Source: Paragordius varius (lineage: Eukaryota > Animalia > Nematomorpha). Taken from it: a DNA stretch of 64,000 nt. The stretch lies in NCBI GenBank assembly GCA_964247055.1, contig OZ176056.1:3100001-3164000 (forward strand), in the 5' to 3' direction. The notes beneath the pieces were generated by a model, which saw nothing but the letters and a program-made list of their open reading frames with translations, was not told where the DNA came from and searched no databases. This document shows positions 1-23,063 of this stretch, piece after piece; position 1 is the stretch's first letter; each line of letters starts with the position of its first letter. The position numbers were made by a program, and so were the translations under genes.

Positions 1-762
1 ACAATTGGTATTGATACGTTGCTTTTAAATGTTTTTTGATATATATGGCACTCGAGTTGGGCGAGTTCGGGATAATCATAATCAAAATATTTACTTTTTA
101 ATGCAATTATAATTGATCCATAAACTATTGTTTTTTAGTTTTCTTGACAGTTTTTTATTTTTCCAACAACGGCAGTTTGGGTACCGCTACTGCGCATGTT
201 TCAAAAAAGTCTTTCTTTCATCATCCGCAAATATATATATTTATATTTATATATGTTAAAATTTATTTTTCAATAATTGAAAAAGGTAATAAATGTAATA
301 CAACGTCAATCCATATAAACTATTTGTTTTTTTAGAAATTCGATTAATTTTATTGCTTTACACATAAAAACCTTCAATAGTTTATTAACTCAATGTAGAA
401 TGTCTAATGCCAGCCTTTTTTTTTGTAAAACATCCTAACAAATCATACAAATTTGTTATTATGAACATTGAAAAATAATAATAAAACAGGCAGCTAAAAA
501 TATTTGGTATAACTCACTGAACAAATAAACACTTATTTAACGAAAAACTGAAGTATTCTCAGTATCAGGGGTTACCTAAGGCGTAATTAAAATCTAATCA
601 ATAAATAAAATAAATTACGTTAATATTAATTTTTAGAAAGATCACAAAATTGTACTATAATATCAATTATTTTATTTATTTATTTTTTTGTTAAATAGCC
701 TACCTTATAAATAACTAATAAAAAGTAATTGATTTCTATTTTGTTATTTTTTGTAAACCATT

Positions 763-3700
763 ATGAATTATATTTGGATATTATTGAGCTGCACTTTGCT
801 ATATGATCAGTCATCTCCAGGTTTTATATTAATATTTCTATGTATTAATTTTGTCAAATTATCCATTTATTTGAATTTTAACCCGAATATATCATGTACA
901 TATGTGAGATTTAAAATTTCTTTATAGATTGTAAATTTATATAGGATCGTTAATACTATTCCCGCCTCTCTTTCTATTTCGCGGTTTCTTGAATAAATTT
1001 TACAATATCTTTGAAATTCGATACCACTGTCCATGCTTTTTCCTAATATTCTAAAAGACAAGTTTAACATTTAATTGATATTAACTAAGGGACACTCAGA
1101 ATTTAATTTTCATTAACATTTTTATATACCTTATAATAATATTTAATTTATAAAACGCAATAATTATGCCATGTCATTGATTAAAATTTGTTTTTGAACC
1201 AAAAATGGTATATATTTAAGGTTTCATTATATTTTTAAACGCGGTATAATTGCATTGCTAATTGGTTAGACCCAACCTTATATGTTATAAAAACAGTACT
1301 TTTGGCATTTTGTATATCCGTCGAAATTTATTAAAGACTCTATTTTTTACAATTCCATCTTTTCTTAAACTAATTTAGTTAAATATAACTGTGCCCAAAA
1401 ACCTCATTGTGTTCATTTTTAATCATTAAACTGTTTAAGAGGTGTTTCTTAACCTTTTTTGTTCACGCCACATCGAATTGAAAATAAAAATTTTGCGCGC
1501 CCCCCCCCCCCCCCCCCCCCCTTTCCCATAACAAAAAACAAAGAAAAACAAATATAAAATTTAATAAATTATTTTATAAATCATAATCAATGATAACGCT
1601 TGTTTCTGCACGGACAAATCTTGTAATTTGTAGATGAGATTATTGACTTTAATGATTTGTTTCTATATCTCCAAGGTATCCAATAAAAGTCGGGAATGCG
1701 CAAGATATAAAAATATGTATGAATCTAATGGATAAATGTTTATAATATTTAGTAAAATAATTACAAGTAAAAGAAAAAATAATTAGATAAAAAATGTGGG
1801 AATTTCCCAATCTTACTATGGTTAGTCCTCAATATTGTAAGTATATAATTTAAATTAAATAATGTCAATAAATTAATTATCAAATAATAGTAAACCAATT
1901 TTAGCATAACTTTAAGATCGTTTTTTCAAGTTCGCGCCCCCTAGATTTTTCTACTCCCTCAGGAATTGTCGCCATCTCCATTTAGTAACTACTAAATCTA
2001 CAGTAAAAACAAATAAGTCGTATTCAAATACAAATTATTATATATAATATAACATTTTTAGAACTAGTATCCTCTGCCGATGGTGTTTCGTTTGGAATAG
2101 TTGACGGTATTTTTATATCTAATTAAATATTTACTTGAATTAATATTGTCTTTTGAGTTAGTTATTTTTAAATAATTTAATTATGAAACATACATAAATC
2201 AGATCAATAAAAAATAATCATATAATTATATATTTCCTATATTTCAATTTCATTGGGATTATGTTATTTTAATATTCTAAAAAAATATATACCTTACTAT
2301 TTTTTTGGACCTTTAATCGTTTAATATTTGATATATTGTGGATAAATAATCATATTCTTAACGCTTACATAAAACAGGGGTGTCCAACAGGCGCTCTTCA
2401 AGCTTGAGAGATATATTAAATATAGAATTTTACAAAATCTTAGTCAAATTGATCTTCTTAAACAAATCTACTGAACAGATTTTCCCATTTTTTTCAATGA
2501 ACTAGCAAAAAGGGTTAAAATAGATAGTAGTTTGGACAGTGTTATGTTTAACACCTAATAAAATATTTGTTTATTCCCATATATTTTGCGAATTGGCCGT
2601 CGGATTTTTTGAGTCAAAAGTGCGGCCCGCGCGGCCATTTGTTTTGGGCACCTCTGGTTTAATATATTATCAATTATAATAGGTTAAAATAGAATATTGA
2701 AACTAACATGACAAATTAAATTTCGGGCAAAAAGTGTACGTGATGAATACACAAAAATAATTTTAAACAGTTAGTTGTATTTATCAAAAACATCATAAAG
2801 TTTTTTTTTATAATAAATGGCTGTAAAAAATTGAATATAAAACGATATTAATAATAATTAATAAGCGCAAAAACATGGGATATTTTAAAAGTATAAGGCT
2901 TTAGTTTTGGTTAAAAAACCTATTTTAACAACATTTTCAAAATTTTATGACATGTTAAATACATGTATTTTTTAACCCTAACCAGGAGATACATAACAGA
3001 AAAGACCATTTAAAGAATACCCTCCTTCTTTATTATGAATAGGTTTAATCCATGGTCTTAATTATAAGGATCTAGTAAACAGTATTGAAATTTTAACAAC
3101 CCCACAAAAATTTTTACCAAAATCTTGTTTTGTAAAAAATCTGATTTCAAGACGATTTACTATATGAATGCCGATACTTATTGTACATGCTTTAATCATA
3201 TGTATTCAATTATGCAAAAATTTAGCCATTTTTATTCATAAATTTTTATAACCGAAATTCCTAACAAAATGTCTGCTAAATCAACTATATTTCCCATATA
3301 GATGAAGATAGCATTGGATCATCTCATACGGAGATATCAGGTTATGCTTATTAATTTTGATACTTTAATGATAAAATTGATAATACATTAAACAAGGTCT
3401 ATTTTCGAAAGCGAAATTTGAGTTGATAAAATGCACACACATAGCTAGTGACATGTGTCATTATTTGATATGTATTTGTCATATGAAAGTTTGCATTTAA
3501 TGTAAGAATAATTTAATTTGGTTTCCATTAATTATTTAATTGATTGGTTGGTATGTTCAGTTATTCACTTCTATCATACCTATTAGTGAATGAAGGGAAG
3601 GCGCTTTGTGCAATCAGAATATACTTCTAAAATCTATTGTTGGCTCACTGTTTCTGGATGATCGGTTTAAATAAATAGCACAATTTGTTAATGTTTTGTG

Positions 3701-6700
3701 TTGTTAAAGATAAATATGTTTTGTATGCCTTTTGTAAAAATTTCCATCTTACAAAAGAAATACTTTTGTGGTAAGAATAATGTGACCAGATATTTTTAAC
3801 TTTGATGCAGTACAAAATTGAAACATACTTTGTCTGTTTTTACACCATCGGTGTGGTATATTACACAGTTTCCATAAAAAATATCCAGATAAAAAAATAT
3901 TCATATTCTGATAGGAAAATATCAGGATTATCATGGTGCTTTTGGTTTAAATTTTTAAATGCGGGGTCTGAAAATGCCATATTTTTTGGCTCTTTTAAAA
4001 TAAAATTCCAACATTTTGTAATAATTTTAAATATCGACTAAATATATTCTTAAAAAAATGCTTACTTTGAAATTTAATTTTTAGCAAAATTTTGTTAAAG
4101 CGTACTTCATACTATTTTGAGCATGATGAAAACGATATAAACGGTTGTTTTATACCATTTATATATATAATTTGATAATGCTAAACAATTTTTTTACTCG
4201 GAATTTTGATTAAAATATTCGTTCGTAATAAAAATTGTGTTTTTTCAATAATTCAGCAAAATTTGCAAACAAACCCAAATTAAAATTTTAAATGTTTAAC
4301 ATCATCAAATTATTTGGAAAAAGGGTTTTGTAATAGCTTAAAGCGTTTTACTGTTTCCATCAATTAAAAATAATTTGAATACGCTTCAACAAAATATTTC
4401 AAATTTGTTTATGCAAAAAAGTAAGATAACTAATAAAAATTAAAATTCACGAAAAAATTAAGAAATATCATACCTCCCACCTAATGAGTCTAGAAAACGT
4501 AAAACTCTTTATTTTATACGAAAATAAGGTTATTTAGAAATCATGTGCCATAAATATGGTACGGGAATAACAATTTTCTATATAACTTTTCATTTTATTT
4601 ATAACAAAAAATGAACATTCTAAACCTGATCAAACATTCAAATATCATAAATTAATTTTTTAATTTTAAATTTTGAGGCACCTCTTTTTACGGAAGCCCT
4701 GATTGAAAGAGCAATTAGACTGAATCTTACTGTGTGGACTCCAAATTATATAGTTTCGTCAGTGAGTGAAAGGCTGCAATAAATTTTATGCATAATCGAG
4801 CAAAAATATAAACCATTAAAATATAGGCCAATCTTAGTTTTATACCGCGAATGAGCCATTTCTTTACAAATTATGGGGTTAGTTTTACAGTGGGTACTAT
4901 ATTAACACTTCGATTCAAATTGGGGTATCTAAATACCCCAGACTACTGAAGGAAACGGTCCCAATTTAAATTTATGCTTCTATCCTGATAATAATTTTAT
5001 GAATATGCCAAAATATCTTGATAAAATTTTGTTTTGAAAAAAAAGTTCCATCTCAAACTACTTCGACGCCATTTTTATTTTACAAAATATTTTGCAAAAT
5101 ATCGTCTTCATTTATTTTTTAGGGTAAAACTAAAGCTAATTTTTTATGTAAATTACATCTAACATCGATAGAAATAAAAACGGTTTATTTTGTTTTATTT
5201 TATAATTTTACCATTGCACACATGTCAGGTGGACTAAATTTTTACCTTTCGGTTTTAGCTTAAAATAACTAATATCAAGTATGTTTGAATAAAGTTTTTT
5301 ATATACTTCGGTTTATTAATATCATATAAGTGCAAAATATTGCCATGGTTTCGATTCCGTCCATATTTTTTAAAGAATTTCATTTTAAACAGGCCTGGGG
5401 TATTTAACTACCCCAATTTGAATCGAAGGACTATAAATGAATGTGTTGTATCCAAGTGTTAAATTCTAAAATAATTTTTTCAATAAAAAATATACATAAA
5501 AAATTATTTTTTTTAAAAAAAGTATTACAAAAGTGGGCGCAGTACAGTCGCGGTTTTTTCTGAAAATCTAGTACTGTACTGCGAAAAACAGCCTATCTGG
5601 TCACACTAGGTAAGAATCAAAAAATAACACTAGACAACAAATTTTTTGTCACTCGGGTTTTTTGCATTTTCTGATATTTACCATCTTTAACAGTACTGAA
5701 ATAAAAATTAAAATTTCATTTAAGAATTTTGTTTAATTTGATTTTTTAGTTATGCGTCCTCTTTATCAAAATTACTAAAAAATGTTTTTCTTTGAAAATA
5801 TACAAGAAATGCCCTTTTGTATTATATCATTCGAAACTAAAATTTTTACATTGATAGTTAATATTGGAAGCGTTTTTGTTAATTAAAAACGAATGGATGA
5901 AAATAGCTGAAACTTCGTCTAGATGGCAATAATGAAATAAGATAACACAAGATAGTTTTTTTGAAAAACATTTATTTTTTACTTTTATGCCATTTAACAG
6001 CCATTTTTATGTTTTTTATTTTTTTCAAAAATTACCATCTCATCAAAATTAAGTATTTAGTTGGCTTATAAATTCAAAATTTCAAAGACTAAAAACAAGG
6101 TTTAAGGTATTTTTGATAATTTTGACGATTATGTAATAAATATACAGTGATATATGCATATTAATATTTACTAGTTAAAATATTTGTAAAGATAATTTGT
6201 ATTAATCAACCTTATTAAAAGCTTTTTCAAAAAAATTTTTTATTTTTATACTGTAACCCTAATAATTACATTAAAATAATTTATAGGACTAATTTAGTTA
6301 GTTTGCAAAAATTTTTGACTTATTTAAGGGTTGAAAAATTTATCATATAAACCCAAATAACTTTTACATCAGATTGATTTGAATAACAAACTACTATTCG
6401 AAAGATGGAGATTTTTGAGCTCTTCGAATGATATTATGGCTCTATATATATATATATACGTCTTGACGAAAATTTCGAGTTTAATGTTAAATCGGAGTCA
6501 AATATTATCGATGCTAAAAAAATAAAATTCTTAGGTATTGGACCAATTTTCTTTTAAGATATACTATTTATGTACTTTAATGAAATAAATTTAAATCTAC
6601 AAGAATGCCAGTTAAAAAAGTCAAAATTTGATCTCTAGTGTTATCATCAAATATATGGATTTATAGATTTATTAGGAATATAGGGTGATGATACCATTGA

Positions 6701-8547
6701 TACCTTACAGACCCGACTCACCCCATATAAAGTCCAAATATCGAATTAAAACCTTATTACAAAAAAGGCCGATAAAGAATAAAATAGTCTCTTTTTCAAA
6801 CACTAAACCAATTTTTAATTATTCGTTTGCTTTATGTCATTAAATCATATATTCAGTGTAAGTAAACCTGTTACATCCTGAAAATACCTATGCAGGTTTC
6901 ATGTAAATTAGCATTAACTTAAATTAACCTTTCATTTTGATTTCTGATTAGCTATGATTATTTAAAAAAACTTAATTTTCTTCTCTCTGTTTAACTGTAG
7001 ATAATATCTTTGAAGAGAAGTCAAAAAATCAAATATTTAATATCGGGGATGACTTAACAATTTGGGTCCAACTTTAAAGTCATCAGTAAAAAATTCGTTA
7101 GTTTTAATTACTTTTGAAATAAATATTTAAAAAATTATTTTTAGAACCAGTACCTCTGACGTATAGCGGTAATCAAATTACCATTGATTTCTCTCGAGTC
7201 ATACAAAAAAATCAATTGTACAATGTTACTATTTATCAGGACGATGAAACACTAAACACCATAAAAAATTCTTCGGAACTAAGCCCTTACATACATAATT
7301 TACCAAAAAAAATTGATGAATCGTATTTCGTATGCATATTTGTTTCAAAAGAAAGATACTGTTCTGATGTTTGGATGTCAGGTTAAATTGCAAAAAATTG
7401 ATATTTCTTACCTTCAAATGTTTCATAATTTTTATGTATATTCCTGGCAAATCATCTATTCAGGATCCGTATAATATGTATATAAAGGCAAAATTTAAAT
7501 TAATTGAATGGTCGTGATTCAAAAGATAAATCGTTCAAAGGTCCTTTTTAAATTACAATGCGCTCAGCTGACCGTTATAGTTTTCTGAAAACTTAAAATA
7601 TTGATCAAACCCTTAATATTATCATATAAGTGCCCATTGATAAGCCGCTTAAAAACCCATTTTTGAATTTCTTTAATTGAATGGAAAAATATAGTATCTC
7701 ACATTATATAATTAATAATTTGATTAAAAAAATAGTTCTAAATTTCACAAATGACAAGGGTTTATTATGTGAACTTCTAGATATATTTGTACATATTAAT
7801 TAACTCTTCTCTAATTTATTTATACAGGTTATCTTGTTGGCGGATCAGGACATTTACCAGCTAATCCAGGTATGACTAATTTCAATTTCATTTGTTGAAT
7901 TAATCAAATGTTGAATTACTAAATGAAGAAAAAAACATTATTCATAAAAAATTCAAAAATATGAAATTTTGAACTCTCCAAAAATTTTAAACCTTCATAA
8001 TGATATAACTATTTTTCCCTAATTAATGTAAAACATTATTTGAAATAAATAACAATTGAACTCATTTAAACCGGGGTGCCAACACGTGGTATTATTAACA
8101 AATCTTAGTATAATTGATAATTTTTTTTTAATTTTCAACGAACTATGAAAAATTGGATAAATTAATTTGTAGTTAAATTTTGTTCCTAAATTTTTTATTG
8201 TTAGATATCTATTATAATGCATATTGAAAATTCGACTCACAAAGCCATCTGTGTTAGTCTTTGTTTAAACCAATATTTATTTATTGTAAATTTAGAGGTA
8301 TATGACTATAATTTTCGATATGAATACCTTTGTAATTTGGATATCCAACTGCTTTGGTTATCAAACAACACAAAAGTTAAAATATATGAAGGAGTCAAAT
8401 GTGAAAATTTTTTGGGGGAGACATCCAATCACTCTTACATCATAAAATATGAATATTTTATTGCCAAGAAAAATCGAACATTTTGTCTACAAACGTTAAA
8501 TCAAAGTGATACGAAGTCTTTCGAGAGGATATCAATAGCGAAACCAA
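763..8547 (+). CDS. 5' half (or paralogue 1) of a secreted Ig/FN3-like modular protein with micro-exons
   Basis: Hand-built exons, all bounded by AG/GT and in phase 1: 763-820 (MNYIWILLSCTLLYDQSSP, signal-like), 2062-2106 (LVSSADGVSFGIVD), 3302-3340 (EDSIGSSHTEIS), 7145-7381 (PVPLTYSGNQITIDFSRVIQKNQLYNVTI...), 7828-7869 (YLVGGSGHLPANP), 8296-8547 (...IQLLWLSNNTKVKIYEGVKC...TSNHS...FCLQTLN). The two large exons are clearly homologous to the exons at 17666 and 20264. Exon connectivity is inferred and there is no transcript evidence. Confidence 0.6.
2375..2656. mobile_element. hAT-type MITE (CAGGGGTGTCCAA...TGGGCACCTCTG family)
   Basis: Imperfect terminal inverted repeats CAGGGGTGTCCAAC / GTTTTGGGCACCTCTG. 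Same family as 34727-35001 and 45206-45472. TSD not recognisable. Confidence 0.6.
4058..4430. mobile_element. Long-inverted-repeat (foldback) MITE, family E copy
   Basis: Arms containing ...AAAGCGTACTTCATACT...GCATGATGAAAACG... and its reverse complement. Related copies at about 19060-19445, 50040-50410 and 62420-62780. Boundaries approximate. Confidence 0.55.
4902..5462 (+). mobile_element. piggyBac-type MITE, copy 1
   Basis: TTAA|CACTT...AAGTG|TTAA ends. Subterminal inverted repeat CGATTCAAATTGGGGTA-N6-TACCCCAG abuts the left terminus and lies about 28 bp in from the right terminus. Confidence 0.85.
7001..7085 (+). pseudogene. Truncated, frame-disrupted Ig-domain exon (pseudo-exon or assembly indel)
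   Basis: Strong acceptor (ttctctctgtttaactgtag), then NIFEEKSKNQIFNIGDDLTIWVQL, similar to TFASIPKKVVANVGETITLSVKL of exon 15279. In-frame TAA at 7075-7077. The donor at 7086 gives 85 nt, one base more than a symmetric 84-nt exon. Confidence 0.5.
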
Positions 8548-9239
8548 GTAAAATTTATTATCATTATTAATTAAGCTAGATGCTAAATAGAGACAGGTTG
8601 GTTAGTTTAAAATTTTAATAAATAGATGCCTTTAAACTTAAGGTGCGGGCTGGCTAAAAAACTGTCTTAAAATAAAATTTTCTTAAAATATACAGATAAA
8701 ATAAATACAAAAAGCAAATATATTTTATCATGACTCCATTACCTTTTAATAGTTTGATATTGAGCAGAGGTGTTTTAATATATCCACTGATTCTATCGAG
8801 AAATTGATGGAACACTAAAGCTTACCCCACTTCAATTCCTGCTAAACTCTAAATAAATAAAATAATAAATAAACATTTACCAATTGAATATTTTCGAATA
8901 CGGTAATTAGTAACTCCAATAATAAGGGCATTGCTTTATAAAAAATCAGATTGCGGTTTTGAGAAATATGAATCCTTCGCTAAATAATTACCAAAAAATG
9001 TATAATAGTGGCAAGTATTCCAAAGATTATCAGATTGTTAAGGAAATAATTGATTAAATAAATGTAATGAATATAAAAAATTTTTAAAAACTTTACATCA
9101 CCACTCAAAACCAAAATTTTGGCAAAAAAAATATTTCTAAATTTAACAGAGGGCCACAAGTGGGGTCCGTAATCACTTGTTGGACACCCCTGTCCCAGAG
9201 CTATTTGATATTCGTCCAATATTAATCCGAATTTAAAAT

Positions 9240-9600
9240 TGCTTTCTTTAGTCTGTTGAGCTATACAAAATTTGAATGAATGTAAAATTGTAAAAAAATT
9301 CTTAAATTTTTTGCCACTATTTTTCTATATAATTTTTACATCGCTAATAGAATATTGTATATTATGGTTAGAAGCTTTCAATACATTTTACCAGTAAAAA
9401 CTTGATAAATCTTGATTATAATATCAGATGTTTGTTTCGATCGTGGGAGCTGTCCCAATTTTATACTCTGAAAGTCACTAAACTGTAAAAATATAAGCTT
9501 ATTATCTTATACATGGGAACAATGTTTAAAAACTTTAACTAAAATGACTTTCAAAATTGTAGTTTAAACAATGATCTTTGAGATGAATACCCCAGGTACT
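9240..9600 (+). repeat. Degenerate dispersed repeat (family D), paired with about 11780-12160
   Basis: Shared segments TGTAAAATTGTAAAAAAATTCT, CATTTTACCAG, GGAGCTGTCC(C/T)AATTT and ATACCCCA occur in the same order at both places. Confidence 0.5.
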
Positions 9601-9674
9601 AGGAGAAAAAAGTGAATAATGAAGTGTTAAGACTGCCTTATTTTTTAATCTTTTCTCTTGAAAAATGGACCTGT

Positions 9675-10309
9675 ATATATCATTTGCACTTCAAGAGTGT
9701 CCTTGAACAATTCAAGTTGGTCCTTGAACAATTCAAGTTGGTCCTTTAACTTTTTTGTTTTGTTTTTAACTTTTATCAATCAAATCAAGAATAATTCGTC
9801 TATTTTATTGTTTTTAACCCATTTTCTATCATTTAACATAAATTTTAAATCGATATCAACTTTTAATCTTTGAAAAACCGTATATCTTTATTAATTTCTT
9901 ATAATAAATTTAGATAATTATAAGATTTTAACACGAAATGAAAAAATATATAAGTTTTCTGGGTTATTAATTAAATATTTTCATTAAAAACATTTAAAAG
10001 TCAATATTTTGTTCAATTGAAAAAAAAATAGTTTTAAACAAAAAAGTGGTTTTTCAATAAAAAAATTTATTTTTAAATGAATAAATATATAATAAATAAA
10101 GAAAATTAGGTTAATAAATAATAATAAAAAAAATAAATGCAAAAATTATGGTTAAATCAAAATTTATAAATTTTAAGGACCAACTGGAACTGTTCAAGGA
10201 CCAACTTGAATTGTTCAATGACCAACTTGAATTGTTCAAGAACCAACTTGAATTGTTCAAGGACCAACTTGAATTGTTTAAGGACACTCTTGAAGTGCAA
10301 ATGGTATAT
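9675..10309. mobile_element. Foldback-like element whose inverted arms carry tandem 21-bp palindromic units
   Basis: The left arm TATATCATTTGCACTTCAAGAGTGTCC + 2 x (TTGAACAATTCAAGTTGGTCC) is the reverse complement of the right arm, which has 5 units (10175-10279) + GGACACTCTTGAAGTGCAAATGGTATA. The centre is AT-rich and non-coding. Confidence 0.75.
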
Positions 10310-10559
10310 TTCAATGTTTATATCAATAATATTTATTGAGCATGTGACGGTTCAGGTTAGTGCTACTATAATCCCGAAAGTACAATTATTTTAGGCATTC
10401 TACCTAAAATTAAAACCATTCAAACGTTTCAAAGAGTTAATTTTTTACCACTTTTAATAAATATTAGGGTTATAAGGTACCGTTTTTTGTAATCACAAAA
10501 AGGAAATTTATGTTTATGCTATTCAAAATATTATACATCGGCTTTTACACATTTCGCTC

Positions 10560-11400
10560 ATTTCTCAGCTAATATATGAATACTGGTTGTCGTTCGCGAA
10601 AATCCATTTGTCAAGACATTTTACCGTCTCCAAAAATATTGAAGTGCTATTCTATGAGGGTATCACCCATTGATGATAAAAGAAATAATAATAAGACAAC
10701 AAATTAGGAGGGTACAGGGAATTGAAATAGGTGGTTCGAGGAATGTATAGACTCCGGATCAAAATTTTATATAGATAATACCGCTAGGGTCTAACCAGAA
10801 ACAGATCATTTCTCTGAAGTGATTTAACCTTGTTATTGGGAGTCAGCTTAGTTGGTGGAAGCCACAATATTTTTTTGTTTTTGAATAATAGTTACTTCTC
10901 ATACATCCATTCAAAAATTATTTTTCGTGACGTTCTATCATTTGACTTTTGCAATTCTTTGATTAAGTTGCGTGAAAGCCATATACCGAGTTTATGCTTT
11001 GCTACATGTATTCTGCCAATTGTTATGTTGGGATATCATCCAACCTTGTTTAGCATTTTCACATTTATCTGGCCAGGCCAATACCCACCCTATTAATAAA
11101 GCATGTTCATATGTTTTGCCAGAAATCTATAGATTTCAATAGCCTTTTCTGATGGCAATAGGTGCCACAAATCTTTTTCAGGCGAAATTCGACATAATTA
11201 TTAATATGTGATAAAAATAAGGAGCTAGTTTTTGGCAAACCAAAATTGGTGTGTTGCTTAATGTAAGATCAATGTATTGGGGTCTGCATCATATTAATCG
11301 TCTGCGTACTTTTTGCCAAAGTTTGATCTTGAGCGAAAACAATATAGTTAATTGGCTCTTACGCAGTTTGATGAAGCAAGTTTTTAGCATTTTTAGGTAA
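10560..11400 (-). pseudogene. Decayed coding fossil, possibly from a non-LTR retrotransposon
   Basis: GC-richer island with long, stop-poor minus-strand frames (e.g. HTNFGLPKTSSLFLSHINNYVEFRLKKICG; KHKLGIWLSRNLIKELQKSNDRTSRKIIFEWM). Family not recognised with confidence. Confidence 0.3.
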
Positions 11401-12614: not shown

Positions 12615-14567
12615 CTATATTTATAAAAATGGAAAATGCTGGCTTTGTGATTTGTTGGAAAACCGTTAGACTCATTCAAATCCAAATGTCGAAAAAATAT
12701 AATTGTTAATGAATGGCCGACAATAGCTTTGCCCTTTTTTGAATTAGGCCTTCAGTTCGGGCCCACCCGTGTACAAAACGGGCTTTTTCAAAAACTGAAA
12801 TCCACAAAAATCGTGTCTTTAAGACAATTTTTCGAAAAACGTGTTGGACCATTCAATTTAATATATAATATTTTTACTTATTTTCGATTGCGCCGAACAT
12901 AGTCGGCTTTTTAATTTAGGCCCTCTTTTTACCCGCCATCCCCGTAAAATGCTATTTTTTCAAAAAAACCGTCCACAAAAAGTTTTTAATCTATTTTTCG
13001 CCAAAGGTAGGAGACTGTAAAATTTTAATGAGGATTCTAGGTTTTCCCTGTTGTAAGGCAAAATTTAGTCGTGCATTTTTTTATTGGCTGCTGGGTAAGG
13101 AGATAACCACTAAAAACTGCTCCGTCATCTCGAAATAGCGTGCCTTTAAGGCTAAATTTTAGAACTATCAGGCCATATGAGTTCAACGGGTGACTAAAAT
13201 ATTACCCTTAACAATGCAAAAATTTAGGTAGCGCGGTTTTTTAAAATTATCAGTTAATTAATCCCTTAATGCCTTGAAAAATGCGCCACCATAAAATGAT
13301 TTTTTTACCAAAAACTAATGAGAGAATATGAAATCAGTCATTATTCCAGGTATTCTCCGTAAAAAGGCAAAAAATTTAATCAAGCGCCTTTTTGTATCAG
13401 CCTCTGGGTGGAGCTACCCGCCAACAACTGCCCATCATATCGATACAACGTGACTTTGGAGGCAAATTTTAAAAAAACTTATCAGGCCATAAGAGTTCAA
13501 TAAGGTGAAATTTTACCCGTAAAAAGTCAAAAATTTAAGTAGATTAGTTTTATTAAATTACCACTTAATTAGCCCTTGCCCTGCAAAATGCGCCCTTTTA
13601 GAATGACTTTTTGGTTTTGAGGCAATTTTTTAAAATCCCACGAGATCGAGCGTTTTGTTTCACCCCTGGTTAGGGGACTAGCGTAAAACTGCGTCACCAT
13701 ATCGATACAGCATGCCTTTGGAGGCAAATTTCAGAAAACCTATGAGACTGATAGGAACATCTAAAATCCATGAATACCAGATATTCCCCATATAAAGGCA
13801 ATTTTCCCGACGCTTTTTTGGAACTTGTACCCGGGGTTAGGAGCTACCTACCAAAAACTATGCCACTATATAAATTGCGTAGTTTTTAAGCTAGTTTACA
13901 GATGAAGCCATATGAGCTTATTAAAAGCTTAAAATATTACCCGTAACTAGGTAAAAATTAAGGTCAGTGTTTTTTTATTAACCGTTAATTTGGGGCCTTA
14001 ATGCCCTGAAAGAAAATAGGCCATCATATAACGATTATTTGAGATATATTTTCGAATAACCCATGAAACGATGGTATCAAAGATGATTTCAAATATTTGG
14101 CCTATAAAGGCAAAGAATTTAACTTAGCGCTTTTTCATATAGGTCTATGGGTAGGGTCTAACGGTTTAAAACTGAGTCGCCATATATAGGCGGTAATTTT
14201 CAAAAAAACCCAAGAAGCCATACGAGTTCAGCTATACATTTCTAGGGAATTCGTATAATATCATTTTTTTAAAAAGGAACCACATATGATTTACTTTTTA
14301 TATCCCTTAATGATTTCGAAAATATAAATTTTAAAATAAATCCAATAATAGTTGAATATTAACTTTAATAAGGGACAGTTTAAATATGGTCAATTCGAGT
14401 CAATATTTGAGCCTATGCCAAAACCCATAAAACAATAATAATTGAAGACATTCTTGTTATTAAATACGTTTTTTATTATTTTTTTATCTCCATTACCTCT
14501 ATTTATTGCAAATTATTAAGAATTATTGGTGACACTACGCCACAGCGAAGCGTGACAGGGCCATTAT
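12615..14567 (+). mobile_element. Non-autonomous Helitron, long type, copy H1 (ends degraded)
   Basis: 5' CTATATTTATAAAAATGGAAAATGCTGG shared with H2-H4. 3' hairpin CACAGCGAAGCGTGAC-AGGGCCA, with the terminal CTAG mutated. Colinear in inverted orientation with 30306-32590. Confidence 0.75.
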
Positions 14568-15278
14568 ATTATAATTGTTAAATTATAGTTGGGTATTGCG
14601 AATTAAATTAAAGTTATTTTGGAACCCAAAAAAGGGTTATGTTTTACGTCAAATATGATCTAACTCTTACGTAAAATGAGTGTTGGGATCCATGTAGAAT
14701 ATTAAATGTATGATAAATTACGCAAAATACTGTTCAAAGAGTGTATGTTTGTTTTTACAAAATATTTAGGATAATGAATATATTTGTGGTATTTTGAGGT
14801 ATATAAAATTACCTTTTTTCTGTTTGGGCTTTTGAATTTGTTAAAAATAATATAAGGGACGTATTTTCGATATTTTTACTTAAATGTAGCTGGCCCCTAT
14901 TGTCTCAATCTTTTAAGATTGTACGCGATACCATTTTGTCAATTGTAGCATTAGAGTTGCAAAATATGATATACCTTTTATTTGATGATTAATTTAACAT
15001 GGAAAAATATTACTCGTAAAAGATTTAAATTTTAATTGCCTTAGTAAAATTGTGCTTATTTGTTATAGAATATTCTCATATTGCAGCCAATAAAATCTAA
15101 AAGTTTTATTGGACAATATTGTAAATGATTTTTTTATCTAACTATATATTTTTAATTAGATTAAATACTTATTCTCTAAAACCAAAAACGGTTTTACAGA
15201 ATCTCAATTTTTGTGGCTCCCCAAAGATCCAATAAAAAAATTGACACATCATATTTTATAATCTTTTTACTAAAACAG

Positions 15279-18200
15279 ATACATTTGCTTCAATACCAAA
15301 AAAAGTTGTTGCAAATGTTGGAGAAACTATAACGCTCAGTGTGAAACTAAACATAGATGTTCAAAATTGCACAGGAATGTGGAAAATAAATGGTACGGTA
15401 ATTAAAGAAGGTTATAATCGAGAATCCTGGGATAAATACCAATATACAAAATCAAATGTTAACAAAAATGATAGTGGAACTTACACTTTTGTGGTTGGAC
15501 CTGAACCCACAAATATATATGTAAAAGTTATAGGTAAGTTTGATTTTTAAATGTAAATTTTTAAATTTTACATAACTTCTGTGTGCCGAAAATTAAAGAT
15601 ATCAACGGTTAATAATAAAGTAATGTTTCCATAAAATGTTTATGGTAAGAATGACATGTATGAACCAAAAAGAGAGTATATTTATTTATTAAAAAAACCA
15701 GTGTGCAGAAGAAAAAATAGCTACCATGGTCATAAGTCTTTACCGGTTTTTGTTAAAAAACATGTAATGAAAGGGATAATCTATAAGTTATATTGAAAAT
15801 ATTGTCTATCGGTGTACATTAAGCCCATATCTATATGATTGCGTCAAAAACTGATTGTTTTTTGTAGCAAAGCCTTCGTCAAGCGATAATTATCATCGAA
15901 ATTGTTGATGTACTGCTCCGCAGGCGTACATCGCATTGATGGGGAAAGGTATAGTTAGATAGCCCAGTTTGAGACTAGGGTGGCTGCGGAAGAATTTTTG
16001 ATAGAACCGATTCGAAGTTTCAATGTTTTTCTTGTTAGACTAGCATAATGTAGCAAAATCACTTTGCCATGTCTTCTGACTCATTCCGGAAATGCATGGA
16101 TTTAAAATCATTTGCTGGCTATAGTATTCTGTGTAAACGTTTACTTTAAACATCATACACAATAGCCCTCTGATACCACCAGACACAAAATATGAACTTT
16201 TTGTCAAAGCGAGAGCTATGAAGTTGCTGATGTAGCGGCCTGGTAATACAACTATGGTTTTTTGCGAAGGGATTCGACAATTTGATCTAGATTTTCTTGT
16301 GACGTTAAAGCAGGATGCCCTATTTTATTCTGGATTTCACATTAATCCGAAGAAAGCCCATTTACCGATTTATTGCTTTTTCTCATTGCTAATAGATGTC
16401 TTACGATTGTTTTTATATATAATTTTCTGTTAATTACCGTTGCGTTTAAGTTATATCACCCGAGATAACTTTCGAAACTTTATCGTCTTTAAGTAGGCTC
16501 CAAATCTCTATAACATTGAAATCACAACTTAATAGTTTAAACCATGTTACACATGTTTTTATCGATGGAGAATGTTCGCCATAAGTTATCAAAAATATAA
16601 CTTTTAGCTTTTTTTTAATGTAAGAAAAGCGATGGTGCCACAAATGGTCTTTAGGCACAAAATCATTATTAAATGATAAAAAAAAGACGCTACTTTTTGG
16701 CGTCAACGATCAAATTGGCTTCTGTATTAACACTTCGATTCAATTTGAGCAATCGATACCCCAGATTCAATTTAAGTTAATATTTTTATATAACTACTGA
16801 AGAAACCGGTCACAATTTAGATTTATGCTTCTATCCTAATAGAAAGAATATAAATAAGCTAATTTTTGAAAATCAGTTCCATGTCAAACTACTTCGACGC
16901 CATTTTTATTTTACAAATTTGCAAAATATCATGTTCATTTATTTTAAAGGTAAAATTAAAGCTAATTTTTTTAATCACATATAACATTGATAGAAATAAA
17001 AATGGGTTTATTTTGTATTATTTCGATTTAGCCAATGCACACATGTCACGTTGGCTAATTTTTACCTTTGGGTTTTACCTTAAAATAATTAATCAAGTAT
17101 TTTTGAATAAAATTTTCTATATATACCTGTTTATTAATTTATATAAGTGCAAAATTTTGCCATGGTTTCGATTCCTGCCATATTTTTTAAAGTATTTAAT
17201 TTTAAACAAGCCTGAGGTATCCAACTACTCCAATTTGAATCAAAGGACTGAAATGAATTTGTATCTATTTTAAACAAGTTCTTACTTTTAGCTGGCGTCA
17301 TCTCCTAGTTAAACCAGTAATGACTTATGACTATAACATAGGCGACGCATATAAATAGAGTTTTGAGTCTCTTTTTTCCTTTTTTTATAAAAGGATAAGG
17401 ACATATCTGGACATGTGAGGTTTAAATACTCGCCTGCCCAGGGCTGACAGTGATTGGAAAAATTGGGTTTCCGGGGTTTGAACTCTGGCACGGAGTGTAA
17501 CGGCGCCCTACTTACTATACCACATCTCTTTAGGTGACTGCATATCGTAATTATAAATTTCAGAAATCATAAAATTGAATTAAAACATGTTTTTGAGTTG
17601 ATTATTTTGGTAATTGGAAAAAAAGAGGGTGCTATTATAATTAATATTATGTTTTATTTATAAAGATCCTGTAGTCTTCCTTTATTCCGATCGGGTAATT
17701 ATTGATTTTTCTACGGTTGTGGAAAAAAATAAAATTCATAATGTAACCATTGATCTAGAGGAGGAAATGAATTTCGTATTAAATTCTACCCAACTAACGC
17801 CCTACACACATAAAATATCTCCAGATTTTGAAGGATATTTTCATATTGACATATCATCCGATTATTTAGAAGAATATTGGATGGTTACGGAAATTCCAGG
17901 TTAACATATTTAATATAAATTTATGCAGGCTGATCTGCACTTGTCAGATAAATAAGGTCTTATTGTTTAATTATTATATAAAATTGTGTAAATTTTCCCG
18001 CAACTTATTATGTTAGAACCGTCATAATAATTAAATATAATTATTATTAAAGGTTTTATCATAAAAGAGCCAAATTTTTGACTTAGAAAATTTTGGTAAA
18101 AAATTATATTATTTATGATTAAAACAGGGAATCAATCCTGAAATATAATTAAATCAAAAAATTATTTTACACGCTAATTTTTACATTAGTAAAACTTTAG

Positions 18201-21200
18201 TCAATATCTTCACTTCACACACAAAAATACTAAATCTAGACAACATATTTTTTTGAGGAATTTTTATTTCATTCATAATTCTCTTTTTCATTTATGTTAT
18301 TCAGTTCGTAGGAGAGTTGAAAACAAATTTAATATAAGACTAAATTTAAATGTCTGTCACGGTGTCCACAATAAATATCGTAATGTTATTATTATGATAA
18401 ATAAATATATCAGGATTATCATGGTACTTTTGTTTTGGCCTTCGAACGATCTAAGAAAGTTATATAAAATTTTGTGGTGAGTCTCCATATCATAAATTGA
18501 CAGAATTCAAGCACATTTTTAAAACAAAAGTTTTGGTGAAAGGAAAATGAATGAATGACAGCGTAGTTAATATTAACTTTTTGCTGGACTTCATAAACAA
18601 ATTTTCTGTAGGCTAATTTGTCCAAGGATAGACTGATTAGATTGGAGATTGTAAGGTGGGTGTTATCTGTTAATTGTTTTGACCATCTTTTTTAGGTCTG
18701 CCTCTTTTACATTTACCTTTACCCAACATGATTGTTTTCTCCAATTTGTTACGGATGACGTGGCGAAATAGCTTAATCTCCGTTTTGTTATTATTTTAAG
18801 TAATGCAATCTTAGGGTTAATTGTATTGTGGATTCATTCATTGGTAAGTTTGTCCGATCATTATTTACAAAGAGGCATTCTCCAGCAGGTTTGCTCAAAA
18901 GCTTGTTTATTTCAAAAATTATCATCAATAGATATGATAAACTACGTATGACAAGCAAAAATTATAATAATTTTAGAAGCGCGGTCGAAAGTTTTTAATA
19001 CCCGTCCAATATGGACAAGTACTCTTATGCATGCTGAATTTTGACATCCAAAAAATTGTAATGCGTGCTAAAAATTTAATTTATAGCAAAATTGTTGGAA
19101 GTTTTTTATATTTTGAAGCTTAATGAAAACGGTATAAAAAATTTTAAGACATTTAAACAGACATTTTCTACATAATTTGAATGCTGAACATTCTATCACC
19201 TTGTTATCTAATATAATGTTTCATTTCTCTTTAAATTTGGGTAAATTATATAAACAATTTGTATTGAACATAATTAACGAATGAAATCTGAGATGATAGA
19301 AATGTTCAGCATCATATCACATAGAAAAATTGTTTTTGTAAAATCATAAAACGTTTTTATATCGTTAGCGTGCGGCAAAATATTAGATGAACGTTTCAAC
19401 ATAATTTTGGTAAAAATTTAGTTTTTGAACAAAATATGCATTTCTTCAAAAATATGTTTTTAATTTTATAAATCTGCGTATGTTAAAATTTTTTAATGCG
19501 GTTTATCATTTTGTGTTAATTTTTATAAAGCCAGCCCATAAAAAATGGAACTTTTAAAGTTTTAAAAATAAAATTTTACTAAAAAATATTTGATGTTATA
19601 ATATTCGATAACTTTGCGATTTTCGAATCATAACTATTTTATATCACTTGTAAACCCCAAGCACCATGACTGTCTTAATTCATTTATCTATCAGAACAAG
19701 GATATATTACCCCGATTTCGGATGCAGTGTAATATAAATTAAATATTTTTTATTTTTTAAAAATTTATTTTTCTGAATATAGTCATGCCTAGCGTCAAAT
19801 TATATTATTTGGATAAACCGGGTGGTGTTAGCCTATATTGGGAACAAGGTAACGGAATATCTTACACTCTATTGGCCAATGAGACGTTTGCAAAAATTAT
19901 CAAACCATACTATTTTATATCATATGAGATGCTTGAAAAAAATAAATTCATTTTTATGGCATCCAACATGAGAGGACAAGCTAATATTACTCTACCTGAA
20001 TGTAATTTTTTGATAAAACCATAAATTTAATGTAAGCTTTTTATTGAAAAGGTTATATGATCGTATCCTAAATAAAATTTGATTGATTAGATCAAATCAA
20101 CACATAGTGTGAACGCTTAAAAGATATTTTTGAAAAAGATTAAAAACTGTTCGAGTTTGGATTATCTCTTTGACGAAATTTTAGGGTAAATATGCGAGTT
20201 CAATATGATTATTATTAGTTGCTTATTTCACCGCTATATTTAAATTAATATTCGAACATTTAGCACCCTTAATCTCCAATATTACGCATAAACCCATGCC
20301 CAACACCCCTGAAGCTAAAGAAAATAAAGCCAGACTAATTATATTAGAATGGGTTTCCAAAGCCACGAAATTTTCGATATATAAGGGAGAAAATTGTGAT
20401 TTGAAAACGCATACAACCACCAATCACTCTTGTCATTTAGTGATAGATGGATCGACTAGGAAAATATGTATTAAAGGTTACAATGGGAAATTCTTTGGTC
20501 CTTTTACAAATTACTCCTTAGAAGAATCAAGTATTTGGAAATAATTTAAACTTTTAGTTCTATAATACTTTGTGTAAATTTCAACTTTTTTACAAAAATA
20601 TGCTCATTTTCCAATAAGGTTTAATCAATAAAACAGTAACTTAATTTATCATCATCCCTACAGAGTTTTACATTTCTATACCTAATAGGGATTGTTTAAA
20701 CGGGCTGTTGCGATTATTATAAGTGTATATAACTTGCAAATATATAAAAAGAGTTGCGTATACAAAAATGTGTTTTCCTTATGCATGTACTTTTATAAAA
20801 TTAATAGCTTTGTAGTTACAGCCTGTTAGAGAAAACGTTATGCGTTTCATATCTATATTAATTCATCATAGAATTTATTTGAACAAATATTATTAAATGG
20901 ATGTAAAAATGGGTCCTTTTTTTCGGCTTATTATGTATAGGTATAATGGAATAATCGATGTTTGGACCATAGTCAAAATGTTTCTATATTGTTTTATAAA
21001 TCCTTGATTTAAATAATTATAATAATAATTGGTTTAATTTAAAAAGACCTAATCACAAATAATATTGCTAGTCCACTTTTTTTACTTAGATTTTCAATAT
21101 TTGCCAATTTTTTAAAATTAATTTAATATTTTGCAATACCATTTGTTCAAATATTGCCCAAAAAAACTGATCAAATTAATTTAGTAACTTAAAATGTAAC

Positions 21201-23063
21201 CCGACTTCCTTATACTATCATATTGAATTTGATATCCATGTTCTGATCTATTTCGCAACAGAATAGTTTTGGTATCAAAAGCAATAACCAAGTCTAAAGT
21301 TTCATAAAATGCGGATGAAAAATAATAGCAAATCATAGAAGTTTAAAATATATTTATGTGTTGTTTTTTGACAATCATTTAAAAGTGGACATTTAGATGA
21401 TTGGTGAAATTTTTAAGCATACATTAAGAAAGTCAACCAATTAAATGGCTTGTAATTAATTTTAAGATAATTAGCGGGGGGAGGGGGGGGAAGTATCAAG
21501 ATTGCGATTGTGTTATAGACCAATACTCCACATTGGCACATTTATCTGTTAGATGAGGGCATAAATATTAAATCATTCTTCGAATAAACAATTAAATAAC
21601 ATTTGGAAACAAAAAATAAATTGGTCTAAACACATATAACGCTAATGCTAATGCTAACCTCCAAAATTTAAAATATACCAGGCAGCAGTATAGTTACTGT
21701 AAAATATTGACGCAACAACTATCATACACAGCTTTTAATAATTATACTTTTAATAAAAATAATCGACTCGCAAAACAGTTTAGAGTGATAACGATTCAGC
21801 CTATAATGATTATATCCATTAGTACATTGTGTCATAAAATTTCAGGGGAATTTTTTTACAGGTTTTCTCATAATTTGTGGTATATCACAGTGACTGTCTA
21901 AAAATCTTAACATAAAAATTTTTCCAATAATTGAATTGTTGCAAATTAACCTAACTGTTTGAATCATTTGATTCGCTTAAGGTGTCAAAGAATCGCCACT
22001 TATTATATTTCGGAGTTTTTAGACTAATTGCATCATAATACGATAAATTCTAAGGATATTATTTGATAGCTAAAGAATTTGTAATGATGAGGTAAAAATA
22101 ATGAAATTAGTTATTTTATTTTTTCTGGTGCACATAAGCGCAGAATCAATTCCTTATATTGGATCAACTAGGAATTTATATTTATGAGCGGGCAAAACAA
22201 TCATTTTTTTATAAACCATTTACAGTTCAAATTCACCTTTAAACAAATCAAATTACCCATTACCCTAAAAATAAATTATGCGTTTTGATCAAAAATTACC
22301 TATACTATTTTTATATATTTAAACAATGCAATTTTGTGTAAAATCAATATAATACTGAAGAACTAATAAACTATGTGCCGTAAATAAATATATTACATAA
22401 AAATGATGAGTTATATTAACCCAACACCAAGGGTCAATTTGAATCGTAAATGGTATATATAAACTTCCTAAAATCAAGAAGAAAGATCATGGATCAAAAA
22501 CTGTAGATTATTATTAGAGATTTAAGGCTAATTTAAACTTAATCACTATATTTTTATTATTATATAATAGGTATTCCTATATTTATTTTAAATATAATTA
22601 GCTTCTGACACTGGTGCAAAAGATCATCATTCTGGTTATTCGGAAAAAAGTAACAATTTCAATGCATAACAATTTTTATCAATATCTAAATTTTTAATTT
22701 TTAATTTTAATTATATTGAACTAAAAATAAATTTATTTTTATTATAATTTAGGAGGTGATGGTGAATCAGGGTTACGGTATCATTCTGGATATAAAGGAT
22801 TAGGTACGTATTTTGTAAATATTATTATTATATTATATTTATTATATTCTAAGACAAGAATAATTTTTGACTGCTAACCGCTCTTAAAAGTTATCAATCA
22901 AAATATTTTATCGAAATATTCATTAGTTTTAATTCCCCTTCAGAATATATGATTGTTTAACTCTATTTAATTTTTATAATGACAAAAATTTTTATATAAA
23001 TAAAAATGTGTTTTTAATGAGGCATTTAATTATTTAGGTTTGTTGGATGACGAGGATACATAG
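15279..23063 (+). CDS. 3' half (or paralogue 2) of a secreted Ig + 3x FN3-like protein with a micro-exon tail
   Basis: Phase 1-1 exons: 15279-15533 is an I-set-like Ig (NVGETITLSV...W.ING...NDSGTYTFVV, canonical Cys absent); 17666-17899; 19783-20001 (GVSLYW...Y...FMASNMRG); 20264-20530 (IILEW...ICIKGYNG..FGPF); micro-exons 22602-22649 (SDTGAKDHHSGYSEK) and 22753-22803 (GDGESGLRYHSGYKGL); terminal 23038-23063 (LLDDEDT*). Many N-x-S/T sequons and no TM segment found. The link 20530 to 22602 is inferred; the gene could instead stop at 20544. Confidence 0.65.
15790..16680 (-). mobile_element. mariner transposon fossil (Mos1-like transposase pseudogene)
   Basis: Minus-strand remnants FVPKDHL, YGEHSPSIKTCVTWFK (helix-turn-helix region) and a degraded PHPPYSPDLAPSDY...EQ...LDE.FA.K...QYF C-terminus. 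Many stops and frameshifts. Confidence 0.75.
16727..17272 (+). mobile_element. piggyBac-type MITE, copy 2
   Basis: Starts TTAACACTTCGATTC and is colinear with 4902-5462. Right end degraded. Confidence 0.8.
17360..17526 (-). mobile_element. tRNA-derived SINE-like element
   Basis: The minus strand reads GATGTGGTATAGTAAGTAGG (A-box-like)...GAGTTCAAACCCC (B-box), followed by a GC-rich body and an A-rich tail. The cloverleaf stems do not pair, so it is not a tRNA gene. Confidence 0.5.
18590..18900 (-). mobile_element. RTE-clade non-LTR retrotransposon 3' fragment
   Basis: Minus-strand translation KRRLSYFRHVIRNKLEKTIMLGKGK.KRGRPKK...LDKLAYRKFVYEV matches the RTE C-terminal pattern. Confidence 0.7.
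19060..19445. mobile_element. Foldback MITE, family E copy
   Basis: Long imperfect inverted arms with central ATGCTGAACATT / AATGTTCAGCAT, similar to 62420-62780. Confidence 0.5.

Follow-up and report, generated by a model that had tools for sequence, protein, structure and literature searches.

Uniform phase-1 introns are a known hallmark of exon-shuffled extracellular modules, as in the class 1-1 mosaic proteins described by Patthy (PMC8001218). In the sponge aggregation factors, a clustered secreted family, 154 of 155 introns are in phase 1, and it has been proposed that the resulting symmetric exons aid alternative splicing (PMC5400394). The schistosome micro-exon genes (MEGs) consist mostly of very short symmetric exons of 3-81 bp, with 10-20 of them per gene (bioRxiv 10.1101/2023.06.21.545858).

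We analysed a window of 64,000 nt from the horsehair worm Paragordius varius (contig OZ176056.1 of assembly GCA_964247055.1, positions 3,100,001-3,164,000, forward strand), in which a sequence-only reading had marked micro-exons interleaved with Ig and FN3-like exons. Rebuilding its exons returned 13, a single set that agreed exactly with the numbers it had given (Table 1). When joined, the predicted model has 1773 nt, which read as 590 sense codons closed by the only stop (591 codons in all), and matches the open frame of about 590 residues reported before; the joined frame was used for counts only, and domain searches were run exon by exon. All 11 internal exons are bounded by AG..GT, begin and end in phase 1 and have a length that is a multiple of 3, and the claim that any of them can be skipped in frame is correct. 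The region 359-23063 is probably best explained as one exon-shuffled gene for a secreted glycoprotein, belonging to a small family that diversified in the germ line.

Table 1. Predicted features of the locus in window coordinates, with the evidence for each. P1-P5 are the sister copies described in the text.
Feature	Position	Strand	Evidence
Upstream block, read as promoter and 5' untranslated region	359..762	+	alignment with P1 and P3
Exon 1, start codon and signal peptide, phase-1 donor	763..820	+	read directly; 13/19 residues common to sister copies; donor kept
Micro-exon m1, 45 nt, phase 1-1	2062..2106	+	45-nt counterpart with both splice sites in P1-P5
Micro-exon m2, 39 nt, phase 1-1	3302..3340	+	splice-site score only; without paralog support
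Ig0 remnant, dead Ig-like exon	6988..7074	+	matches first third of the 258-nt Ig0 of P1-P4
Module exon A (A/D type, FN3-like sandwich)	7145..7381	+	59-62% protein identity to sister A, identical boundaries
Micro-exon m3, 42 nt, phase 1-1	7828..7869	+	42-nt sister counterpart at another position
Module exon B (B/F type, predicted FN3-type fold, two invariant cysteines)	8296..8547	+	58-61% identity to sister B; phase-1 donor kept
Module exon C (Ig-like)	15279..15533	+	54-57% identity to sister C; 36-37% to Ig0
Module exon D (A/D type)	17666..17899	+	49-56% identity to sister D
Module exon E (FN3-like by sequence pattern)	19783..20001	+	51% identity to sister E, identical boundaries
Module exon F (B/F type)	20264..20530	+	36-41% identity to sister F
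Micro-exon m4, 48 nt, phase 1-1	22602..22649	+	57-nt sister counterpart
Micro-exon m5, 51 nt, phase 1-1	22753..22803	+	48-nt sister counterpart
Terminal exon, acidic tail and stop	23038..23063	+	read directly; conserved in P1-P5, where the stop comes two codons later

Further upstream on this contig, at a distance of 150-300 kb, lies a sister lineage that comprises four copies in tandem units of 51 kb each (P1-P4) and one broken copy, the pseudogene P5. Since P1-P4 are 93-99% identical to one another, they count together with P5 as one independent comparison, not five, and the four tandem copies could in part be an assembly duplication. Twelve of the 13 window exons have counterparts in the sister lineage, the exception being the 39-nt m2, and the six module exons and their counterparts are all bounded by AG..GT and in phase 1-1. 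The longest conserved stretch of the locus outside the exons is the upstream block (~400 bp); window positions 359-822 align with P1 and P3 at 71% over ~500 bp (E 7e-47). A genome-wide count of the family's Ig exons gave nine intact ones, all explained by five genes, and strong matches were found on this contig only, with the best match elsewhere on contig 4 at 11.66-11.84 Mb (E about 1e-3). The window copy, the four tandem 51-kb copies and the pseudogene appear to make up a small family that is confined to this contig.

Whole exons differ between the two lineages, and the evolutionary losses among these differences kept the frame. The Ig0 exon is dead in the window gene, where ~200 bp are deleted, a stop follows and no phase-1 donor remains. 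The m3 counterpart lies in the sister copies between the signal exon and m1, unlike in the window gene; it is intact in P5, its donor has changed from GT to AT in P1-P4, and P2 carries an additional 1-nt deletion. With one exon deleted, one disabled by a splice-site change and one micro-exon relocated, the family illustrates exon shuffling.

The five micro-exons, of 39-51 nt each, supply 225 of the 1773 coding nt (12.7%), and none of them appears as an open reading frame, which bears out the earlier remark that they are absent from the ORF track. On the window alone they are unconvincing, because the interval 821-23037 holds 71 open AG..GT phase 1-1 candidates of the five lengths and any symmetric exon keeps the frame; the sister copies appear to raise them above chance. 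Four of the five, together with the signal and terminal exons, form islands of 72-75% identity amid introns that cannot be aligned with the sister copies, and every length change of a conserved micro-exon between lineages is in frame. Intact copies keep the splice sites of three of the four conserved micro-exons, and the 42-nt exon keeps them in the broken copy P5 only. The m1 counterpart in P1-P5 measures 45 nt (72-74% identity), and that of m4 measures 57 nt and is located ~140 bp upstream of the 48-nt m5 counterpart (score 46-48 vs. 21-25 for the null), the length differences in both, 3 nt for m5, being in frame and the splice sites kept. Comparison of the window gene with the sister copies gave a pooled micro-exon dN/dS of 0.52. 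No counterpart of m2 was detected in any of P1-P5; its splice-site score is the highest among 140 candidates outside the training set and ranks fifth of 144 overall.

We considered and rejected the idea that the micro-exon islands are repeats, as the m1, m2, m3 and m4/m5 regions each match only themselves in a DNA search of the genome, a search too insensitive for the 72-75% identical sister copies, which came from local blastn and a candidate scan. An alternative last exon after F, at 22185-22410, was likewise discarded. This stretch is conserved with the sister copies and offers an acceptor and a short frame to a stop; the genome search showed at least 1420 first-look candidates for it and copies of ~76-80% identity spread over many contigs, which marks it as a high-copy interspersed repeat.

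Ig and FN3, the names under which the module exons had been reported, appear to hold at the level of fold and fail at the level of family profiles, as no Pfam family scores above its curated cut-off for any module exon of the window or the sister copies. Exon C reaches 23.3 bits for I-set (cut-off 23.7) and 24.3 bits for Ig_3 (cut-off 30), with lower scores for the sister Ig exons, and fn3 (PF00041) matches no exon at E up to 10 for the window exons or up to 1 for the sister exons. In the Ig exons, a core tryptophan and a D-x-G-x-Y motif are invariant and the canonical cysteine pair is replaced. Structure models of the A/D and B/F types are all-beta sandwiches whose structural matches are dominated by FN3 domains at middling scores (TM 0.55-0.74, Z 6-7.4); the exon A model has a pLDDT of 80 with FN3-type matches at Z 6-7.4, and the exon B model a pLDDT of 82 with FN3 matches at a TM of up to 0.74. 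With A/D and B/F modelled and E judged by its sequence pattern, the modules are predicted to fold as Ig/FN3-type beta sandwiches.

Searches for more distant sequence relatives returned little. With the A/D profile, exhaustive HMMER yielded no relatives and only two weak matches, one to a bacterial Big_5 repeat protein and the other to a protein without an informative Pfam match. The profiles of the three module types showed no relation in profile-profile comparison, and leads from the ESM Atlas were all generic Ig-like and FN3 ones below 0.9. The genome is similar to that of a louse in size and G+C; a search for the arthropod cuticle R&R domain came up empty, which is weak evidence against an arthropod origin, since the controls gave no signal either. 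Within the gene, exon D is 32% identical to exon A in the A/D alignment and 43% over the matched stretch. The module order shows that a triplet of Ig, A-type and B-type modules was duplicated within the gene long ago, giving Ig0-A-B followed by C-D-(E)-F. The product would contain one Ig-like and five FN3-like modules of three sequence types, each an autonomous beta sandwich; the micro-exons would encode short segments rich in glycine, serine and aspartate, and a short acidic tail would end the protein.

Most likely the product is a secreted glycoprotein of ~590 residues, as predicted from its hydrophobic N-terminus, sequon enrichment and lack of a transmembrane-like window. The N-terminus, read from the sequence, is hydrophobic and is a predicted signal peptide. 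Both related observations of the sequence-only reading were confirmed: the many N-glycosylation sequons amount to 16 N-x-S/T sites vs. 6.6 expected, a number that none of 2000 shuffles reached, and the absence of a transmembrane segment is reflected in a maximum 19-residue Kyte-Doolittle value of 1.33 in the joined model.

Between the window gene and the sister copies, dN/dS of the module exons is 0.26-0.69, which together with the pooled micro-exon value speaks for coding constraint. Between P1 and P3, the median divergence over 100 aligned columns is 0.02, with 0.21-0.26 for exon F and 0.16 for exon A, and these two exons are where homologous sequence has diverged most; amino-acid change in the youngest copies is concentrated there. 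Exon F is hypervariable among P1, P3 and P5. For the P1/P3 pair, dN/dS is 3.6 for exon A, 3.2 for Ig0 and 1.7 for F, and a Fisher test on Ig0 and A gave p = 0.018. The p values of 0.02-0.05 belong to exon subsets chosen after seeing the data, and pooling the seven module exons gives 0.13. The synonymous divergence of exon F is also raised (0.21), so that exon-level gene conversion would fit as well as positive selection. The apparent selection signal in the youngest copies is modest. Gene conversion from the window gene was rejected as the source of the P1/P3 differences, as most differing residues match neither state there.

Two other accounts of the locus concern its unity and its integrity. 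The sequence-only reading had preferred one gene over two tandem paralogs, and we reach the same view: the single upstream block with its signal exon and the B-to-C gap of 460 bp in P1 point to a single secreted-protein gene. It is very improbable that there are two genes, the first ending after B at a stop (8568-8570) reached by reading through the donor and the second starting with an unseen signal exon before C. The internal duplication of the triplet would suit such a pair, read-through of the B donor meets a stop after seven codons in the window and three in P1, and ATG-led hydrophobic open stretches precede C in the window (15125-15232) and in P1. However, these stretches are not conserved between the lineages, whereas the real signal exon is 68% conserved, and they have poor phase-1 donors, for which reasons we rejected a second signal exon before C. 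Conserved upstream block, tail and C-terminal micro-exon pair each occur only once per unit. The B-to-C gap in P1 is short although other introns reach kilobases, alignment found no similarity between the gaps of the two lineages, and every copy retains B's phase-1 donor and C's phase-1 acceptor. We also regard it as improbable that the window copy is a decaying or unexpressed duplicate whose open exons are mere relics after loss of the first Ig exon. Ig0 is indeed deleted and stopped in this copy, and another member, P5, is clearly a pseudogene. Yet, although synonymous sites differ from the sister lineage by 0.5-1.1 and stops arise easily in a genome of 27% G+C, all 13 exons are open and all splice sites intact; dN/dS is below 1 in every exon, sequons are enriched, and loss of a phase 1-1 exon leaves the frame unbroken.

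A further account takes the in-frame skippability of the exons as the basis of a combinatorial system, in which skipping many subsets of symmetric exons would yield a varied set of secreted proteins by the strategies of both MEGs and Dscam. The sequence-only reading took this step, which we do not follow, and we consider such a system unlikely. Every skip would keep the frame, the gene has survived the evolutionary loss of whole exons, which indicates that shorter products are tolerated, and the family evolves fast. But uniform phase 1 is expected in any mosaic of extracellular modules, where it is forced on exons that lie between phase-1 introns; it is a textbook mark of shuffled modules and not evidence for combinatorial splicing. 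The small micro-exon share of the coding sequence contrasts with MEGs, which are built from 10-20 very short exons. There is no tandem array of alternative exon versions, as each module type occurs once per position, and no membrane anchor. RNA exon skipping would at most be an added layer.

The one-gene, exon-shuffled reading is in keeping with the described systems to differing degrees. Like the class 1-1 mosaic proteins (PMC8001218), the window gene has one beta-rich module per exon with flanking phase-1 introns and a phase-1 intron after the signal peptide, kept in the sister copies, and its modules have been duplicated, lost and moved without a break in frame. Unlike them, it has two module types, of three, for which no sequence relatives could be detected beyond this genome (HMMER for A/D; Pfam blank for all), and its short linkers also sit on symmetric exons of their own. 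The sponge aggregation factors (PMC5400394) likewise form a cluster of genes for extracellular proteins that evolve fast and have almost exclusively phase-1 introns; they contain Calx-beta, Wreath and VWA domains instead of Ig/FN3-like ones and belong to a different phylum, the window protein is far smaller, and nothing in it points to allorecognition. Like the schistosome MEGs, the locus has an exon for a signal peptide and long introns around symmetric micro-exons, it evolves rapidly, and its product is predicted to be secreted, but only 5 of its 13 exons are micro-exons and its bulk consists of folded modules, so that it is not a mostly-micro-exon gene. Dscam also combines Ig-like and FN3-like modules and has its variety in particular exons; the window gene, by contrast, lacks alternative-exon arrays, a transmembrane segment and a cytoplasmic tail, ends in a short acidic tail instead, and shows its variety between gene copies, not between splice forms.

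Taken together, every module and linker lies on its own exon between phase-1 introns, which is the usual exon-shuffled architecture. The protein may be an extracellular binding or recognition molecule, and gene duplication, the gain and loss of exons and positive selection would create its variety in the germ line. What is known here is the phase-1 module mosaic architecture, and what is new is that the copies differ by whole exons and that exons A and F are the ones that diverged most between P1 and P3. The locus gives no grounds for claiming a new mechanism of protein diversification. The exon map is a usable annotation of a gene that ordinary gene finders would probably split or strip of its micro-exons. 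A more far-reaching idea, which we hold to be rather unlikely, is that this parasitic worm has a germ-line-diversified recognition system, in which A, F and parts of the Ig exons are kept hypervariable between tandem copies, the surrounding introns are homogenised, and exon gain, loss and relocation, possibly with RNA skipping, add variety. If true, the family would add a new analogue, confined to one lineage, to the variable families of immunity or host interaction. As a lineage-restricted secreted family in a horsehair worm, these genes are a reasonable candidate for a role in host interaction or immunity.

Exon recovery was carried out in the window (G+C about 27%), which lies in an assembly of 110.6 Mb in 44 contigs. 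The arthropod cuticle domain was looked for in this genome and gave no match, although the controls of that search gave none either. Stop-free stretches of the plus strand were listed, phase 1-1 boundaries were set on the six long ones, and all open AG..GT phase 1-1 stretches of 45, 39, 42, 48, or 51 nt were enumerated as micro-exon candidates. The sequence-only reading had stated coordinates for the first and last exons only, and one 13-exon combination matches its numbers. When these exons were joined, we obtained a frame of 1773 nt (591 codons) with the last codon as its sole stop; the G+C content was 30 to 45% in the exons versus 27% in the introns. The joined frame served for counts, and database and structure tools were given individual exons. 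The predicted product has the two properties claimed for it, many N-glycosylation sequons (16 in the joined frame versus 6.6 expected by composition, a number reached in 0 of 2000 shuffles) and no transmembrane segment, as no 19-residue window beyond the N terminus has the hydrophobicity of a membrane span.

Predicted exons of the window gene (m, micro-exon; positions are those of the window)
Feature	Position	Strand	Basis
Signal exon	763-820	+	Open frame, phase-1 donor
m1, 45 nt	2062-2106	+	AG..GT, phase 1-1; counterpart in sister copies
m2, 39 nt	3302-3340	+	AG..GT, phase 1-1; without sister counterpart
Module exon A	7145-7381	+	Phase 1-1; sister counterpart
m3, 42 nt	7828-7869	+	AG..GT, phase 1-1; sister counterpart elsewhere in gene
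Module exon B	8296-8547	+	Phase 1-1; sister counterpart
Module exon C	15279-15533	+	Phase 1-1; just under I-set cut-off
Module exon D	17666-17899	+	Phase 1-1; sister counterpart
Module exon E	19783-20001	+	Phase 1-1; sister counterpart
Module exon F	20264-20530	+	Phase 1-1; sister counterpart
m4, 48 nt	22602-22649	+	AG..GT, phase 1-1; 57-nt sister counterpart
m5, 51 nt	22753-22803	+	AG..GT, phase 1-1; 48-nt sister counterpart
Terminal exon (tail)	23038-23063	+	Stop codon

Sister copies were sought by an exon-by-exon search of the whole assembly, the family count that had been proposed as a check, and this placed the window gene, four tandem copies (P1-P4), and a broken dispersed copy (P5) on one contig. 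P1-P4, at 2.79, 2.84, 2.90, and 2.95 Mb, have the exon order and strand of the window gene and occupy a tandem array of four roughly 51-kb units with one family gene each (2.79-2.97 Mb; loci L009-L013 and L016-L022). Their exons run signal, m3-like, m1-like, Ig0 (an Ig-like exon), A, B, C, D, E, F, m4-like, m5-like, and tail, all boundaries are phase 1, and wherever an exon differs in length from its window gene counterpart, the difference is a multiple of three. Protein identity to the window gene is about 50 to 60% for most exons and 36 to 41% for exon F, and the introns are unalignable. Since P1-P4 are 93 to 99% identical to one another (98.5-99% for P1/P2 and P3/P4, 94-97% pair versus pair), we count them as one independent lineage; the array may reflect a real recent amplification or may owe part of its extent to assembly duplication. 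P5 is a partial copy on the minus strand at 4.783-4.803 Mb (L014, L015). It has no signal exon and has lost four module exons (Ig0 to C), and these losses, a stop within exon D, and a 1-nt deletion in exon E mark its sequence as that of a pseudogene. A profile of the family Ig exon found nine intact exons genome-wide, all within five genes, plus the window remnant. The next-best matches were on contig 4 (E about 1e-3, with at least three weak ones at 11.66-11.84 Mb), and anything there would be distant kin at most.

The window gene region contains 71 open phase 1-1 candidates with the five micro-exon lengths, and symmetry by itself is enough to preserve the frame, so the micro-exons alone prove little. 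Four of the five proposed micro-exons are nevertheless backed by sister counterparts. A 45-nt counterpart of m1 with both splice sites kept was present in 5/5 sister copies, the sister lineage carries a 42-nt counterpart of m3, and the counterpart of m4 (57 nt) lies directly upstream of that of m5 (48 nt). The homology of m1, m3, m4, and m5 forms islands of about 75 to 115 bp with 72 to 75% identity amid unalignable introns, and a genome search found no repeat character in them. Between the window gene and the sister lineage, dN/dS was 0.52 for the pooled micro-exons, similar to the module exons. No counterpart of m2 was found in the sister copies. It ranks first by splice-site score among the 140 candidates left out of training, with a matrix trained on the other exons; since it was probably picked on like splice features, m2 stays an unproven candidate exon despite this score.

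The locus had alternatively been described as two tandem paralogous genes, and the comparison between copies argues against this. Conservation extends furthest in a block of about 500 bp that the window gene has in common with the sister copies (71% identity, E 7e-47), comprising about 400 bp upstream of the ATG and the signal exon. The B-to-C gaps of the two lineages had nothing in common on alignment, and the gap is only 460 bp in P1. The phase-1 donor of B and the phase-1 acceptor of C are preserved in every copy, conservation of ATG-led open stretches 5' of C was not found across the lineages, and each unit has one tail. Together, the single upstream block, the short P1 gap, the kept junction, the unconserved ATG stretches, and the one tail lead us to read the locus as a single gene. 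Internal resemblance was observed between Ig0 and C (36-37%), A and D (32-41%), and B and F (13-27%); we take the gene to have arisen when an Ig/A-type/B-type triplet was duplicated internally, with E added.

The Ig and FN3 labels given to the modules hold for the predicted fold and fall short at Pfam cut-offs, which no module exon exceeded; exon C reached 23.3 bits against I-set (cut-off 23.7). For the A/D and B/F types, AlphaFold predicts all-beta sandwiches (pLDDT 80 and 82) whose best structural matches are mostly FN3 (monobodies, fibronectin, gp130, NCAM, CD45, and cytokine receptors) at middling scores (TM 0.55-0.74, Z 6-7.4). Profile-profile comparison among the three module types showed no relation. 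The A/D profile was also run exhaustively with HMMER against 1.84 billion representative proteins and gave two weak matches and nothing else, one a bacterial Big_5 repeat protein and the other without an informative Pfam match. Because that collection does not include this genome, the result shows a lack of relatives among the other organisms sampled and is silent on annotation here.

Two kinds of change between copies are new relative to the sequence-only reading. One concerns whole exons. Of the Ig0 exon, the window gene retains the opening third (6988-7074), beyond which about 200 bp have been deleted and a stop follows. The m3-like donor GT is AT in P1-P4, and P2 additionally lacks one base; the P5 pseudogene keeps the GT that the intact copies have lost. 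Judged from this splice site, the m3-like exon is disabled in P1-P4, as expected once use of an exon ceases. Its position also differs: the window gene has m3 in the intron from A to B, and the sister lineage has the counterpart in that from the signal exon to m1 (L011:3554-3595, within the P1-P4 array). The homology across the two positions spans only about 75 bp, and neither lineage has a trace of m3 at the other's position.

The second kind is exon-centred divergence between P1 and P3. In a whole-gene alignment, median divergence per 100 aligned columns was 0.02, and the most diverged stretches, with non-homologous insertions set aside, were exon F (0.21-0.26) and exon A (0.16). The dN/dS values were highest in A (3.6) and Ig0 (3.2), followed by F (1.7), C (1.3), and B (0.35); D and E do not differ between the two copies. 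Fisher tests gave p = 0.018 when Ig0 and A were combined and p = 0.13 across all seven module exons. The differences are patchy, and the majority match neither state of the window gene. Since synonymous divergence is raised in exon F too, exon-level conversion from an unsampled donor explains it as well as positive selection does.

Several other elements were observed in the window. A block of about 200 bp at 22185-22410, conserved with the sister copies, mimics an exon (acceptor and short frame) and was rejected as a high-copy interspersed repeat: a first look at the genome gave at least 1420 candidates, and the scored copies, about 76 to 80% identical, are spread over many contigs in both orientations, often flanked by short inverted matches (MITE-like). 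One repeat of about 500 bp occurs in two window gene introns (4880-5520, 16740-17300) and in sister-copy introns; its 75 to 90% translated identity in all three frames indicates DNA-level similarity, and it is probably a transposon fragment. The B-to-C intron holds 21-nt tandem repeat arrays at 9690-9750 (2.9 copies) and 10175-10285 (5.3 copies), whose consensus units are largely mutual reverse complements, so that the arrays make an inverted pair with about 430 bp between them. On the minus strand, 33389-33862 is an intron-less ORF whose 157 residues include a GNAT acetyltransferase domain (Pfam Acetyltransf_1, E 9e-16) and have no exact match in the public protein collection. Retrotransposon ORFs with marked G and A skew lie at 40044-42504 (+), the second matching RVT_1 sub-threshold (29.0 versus 29.6 bits). 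At 50761-52444 (+), an exon with a protein-kinase domain start (glycine loop; Pkinase 25 bits, under cut-off) comes after a long serine/asparagine-rich open frame, and the two probably belong to one multi-exon kinase gene.

Modules bounded by phase-1 introns, with one following the signal peptide as well, form the classic class 1-1 arrangement, for which Ig and FN3 modules are cited as examples (PMC8001218); the window gene is likewise all phase 1, including after the signal exon. In a sponge clustered extracellular family, 154 of 155 introns are phase 1, and its authors too proposed symmetric exons as an aid to alternative splicing (PMC5400394). The proposal that the locus combines the strategies of micro-exon genes and Dscam was not supported. 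Micro-exon genes are defined by 10 to 20 very short exons making up the gene (bioRxiv 10.1101/2023.06.21.545858), whereas micro-exons are just 12.7% of the window gene coding sequence, and Dscam requires alternative-exon arrays and a membrane anchor, neither of which the window gene has. Taken together, the class 1-1 architecture, the sponge precedent, and these missing features make the locus a fresh, lineage-restricted example of an already known kind of gene.
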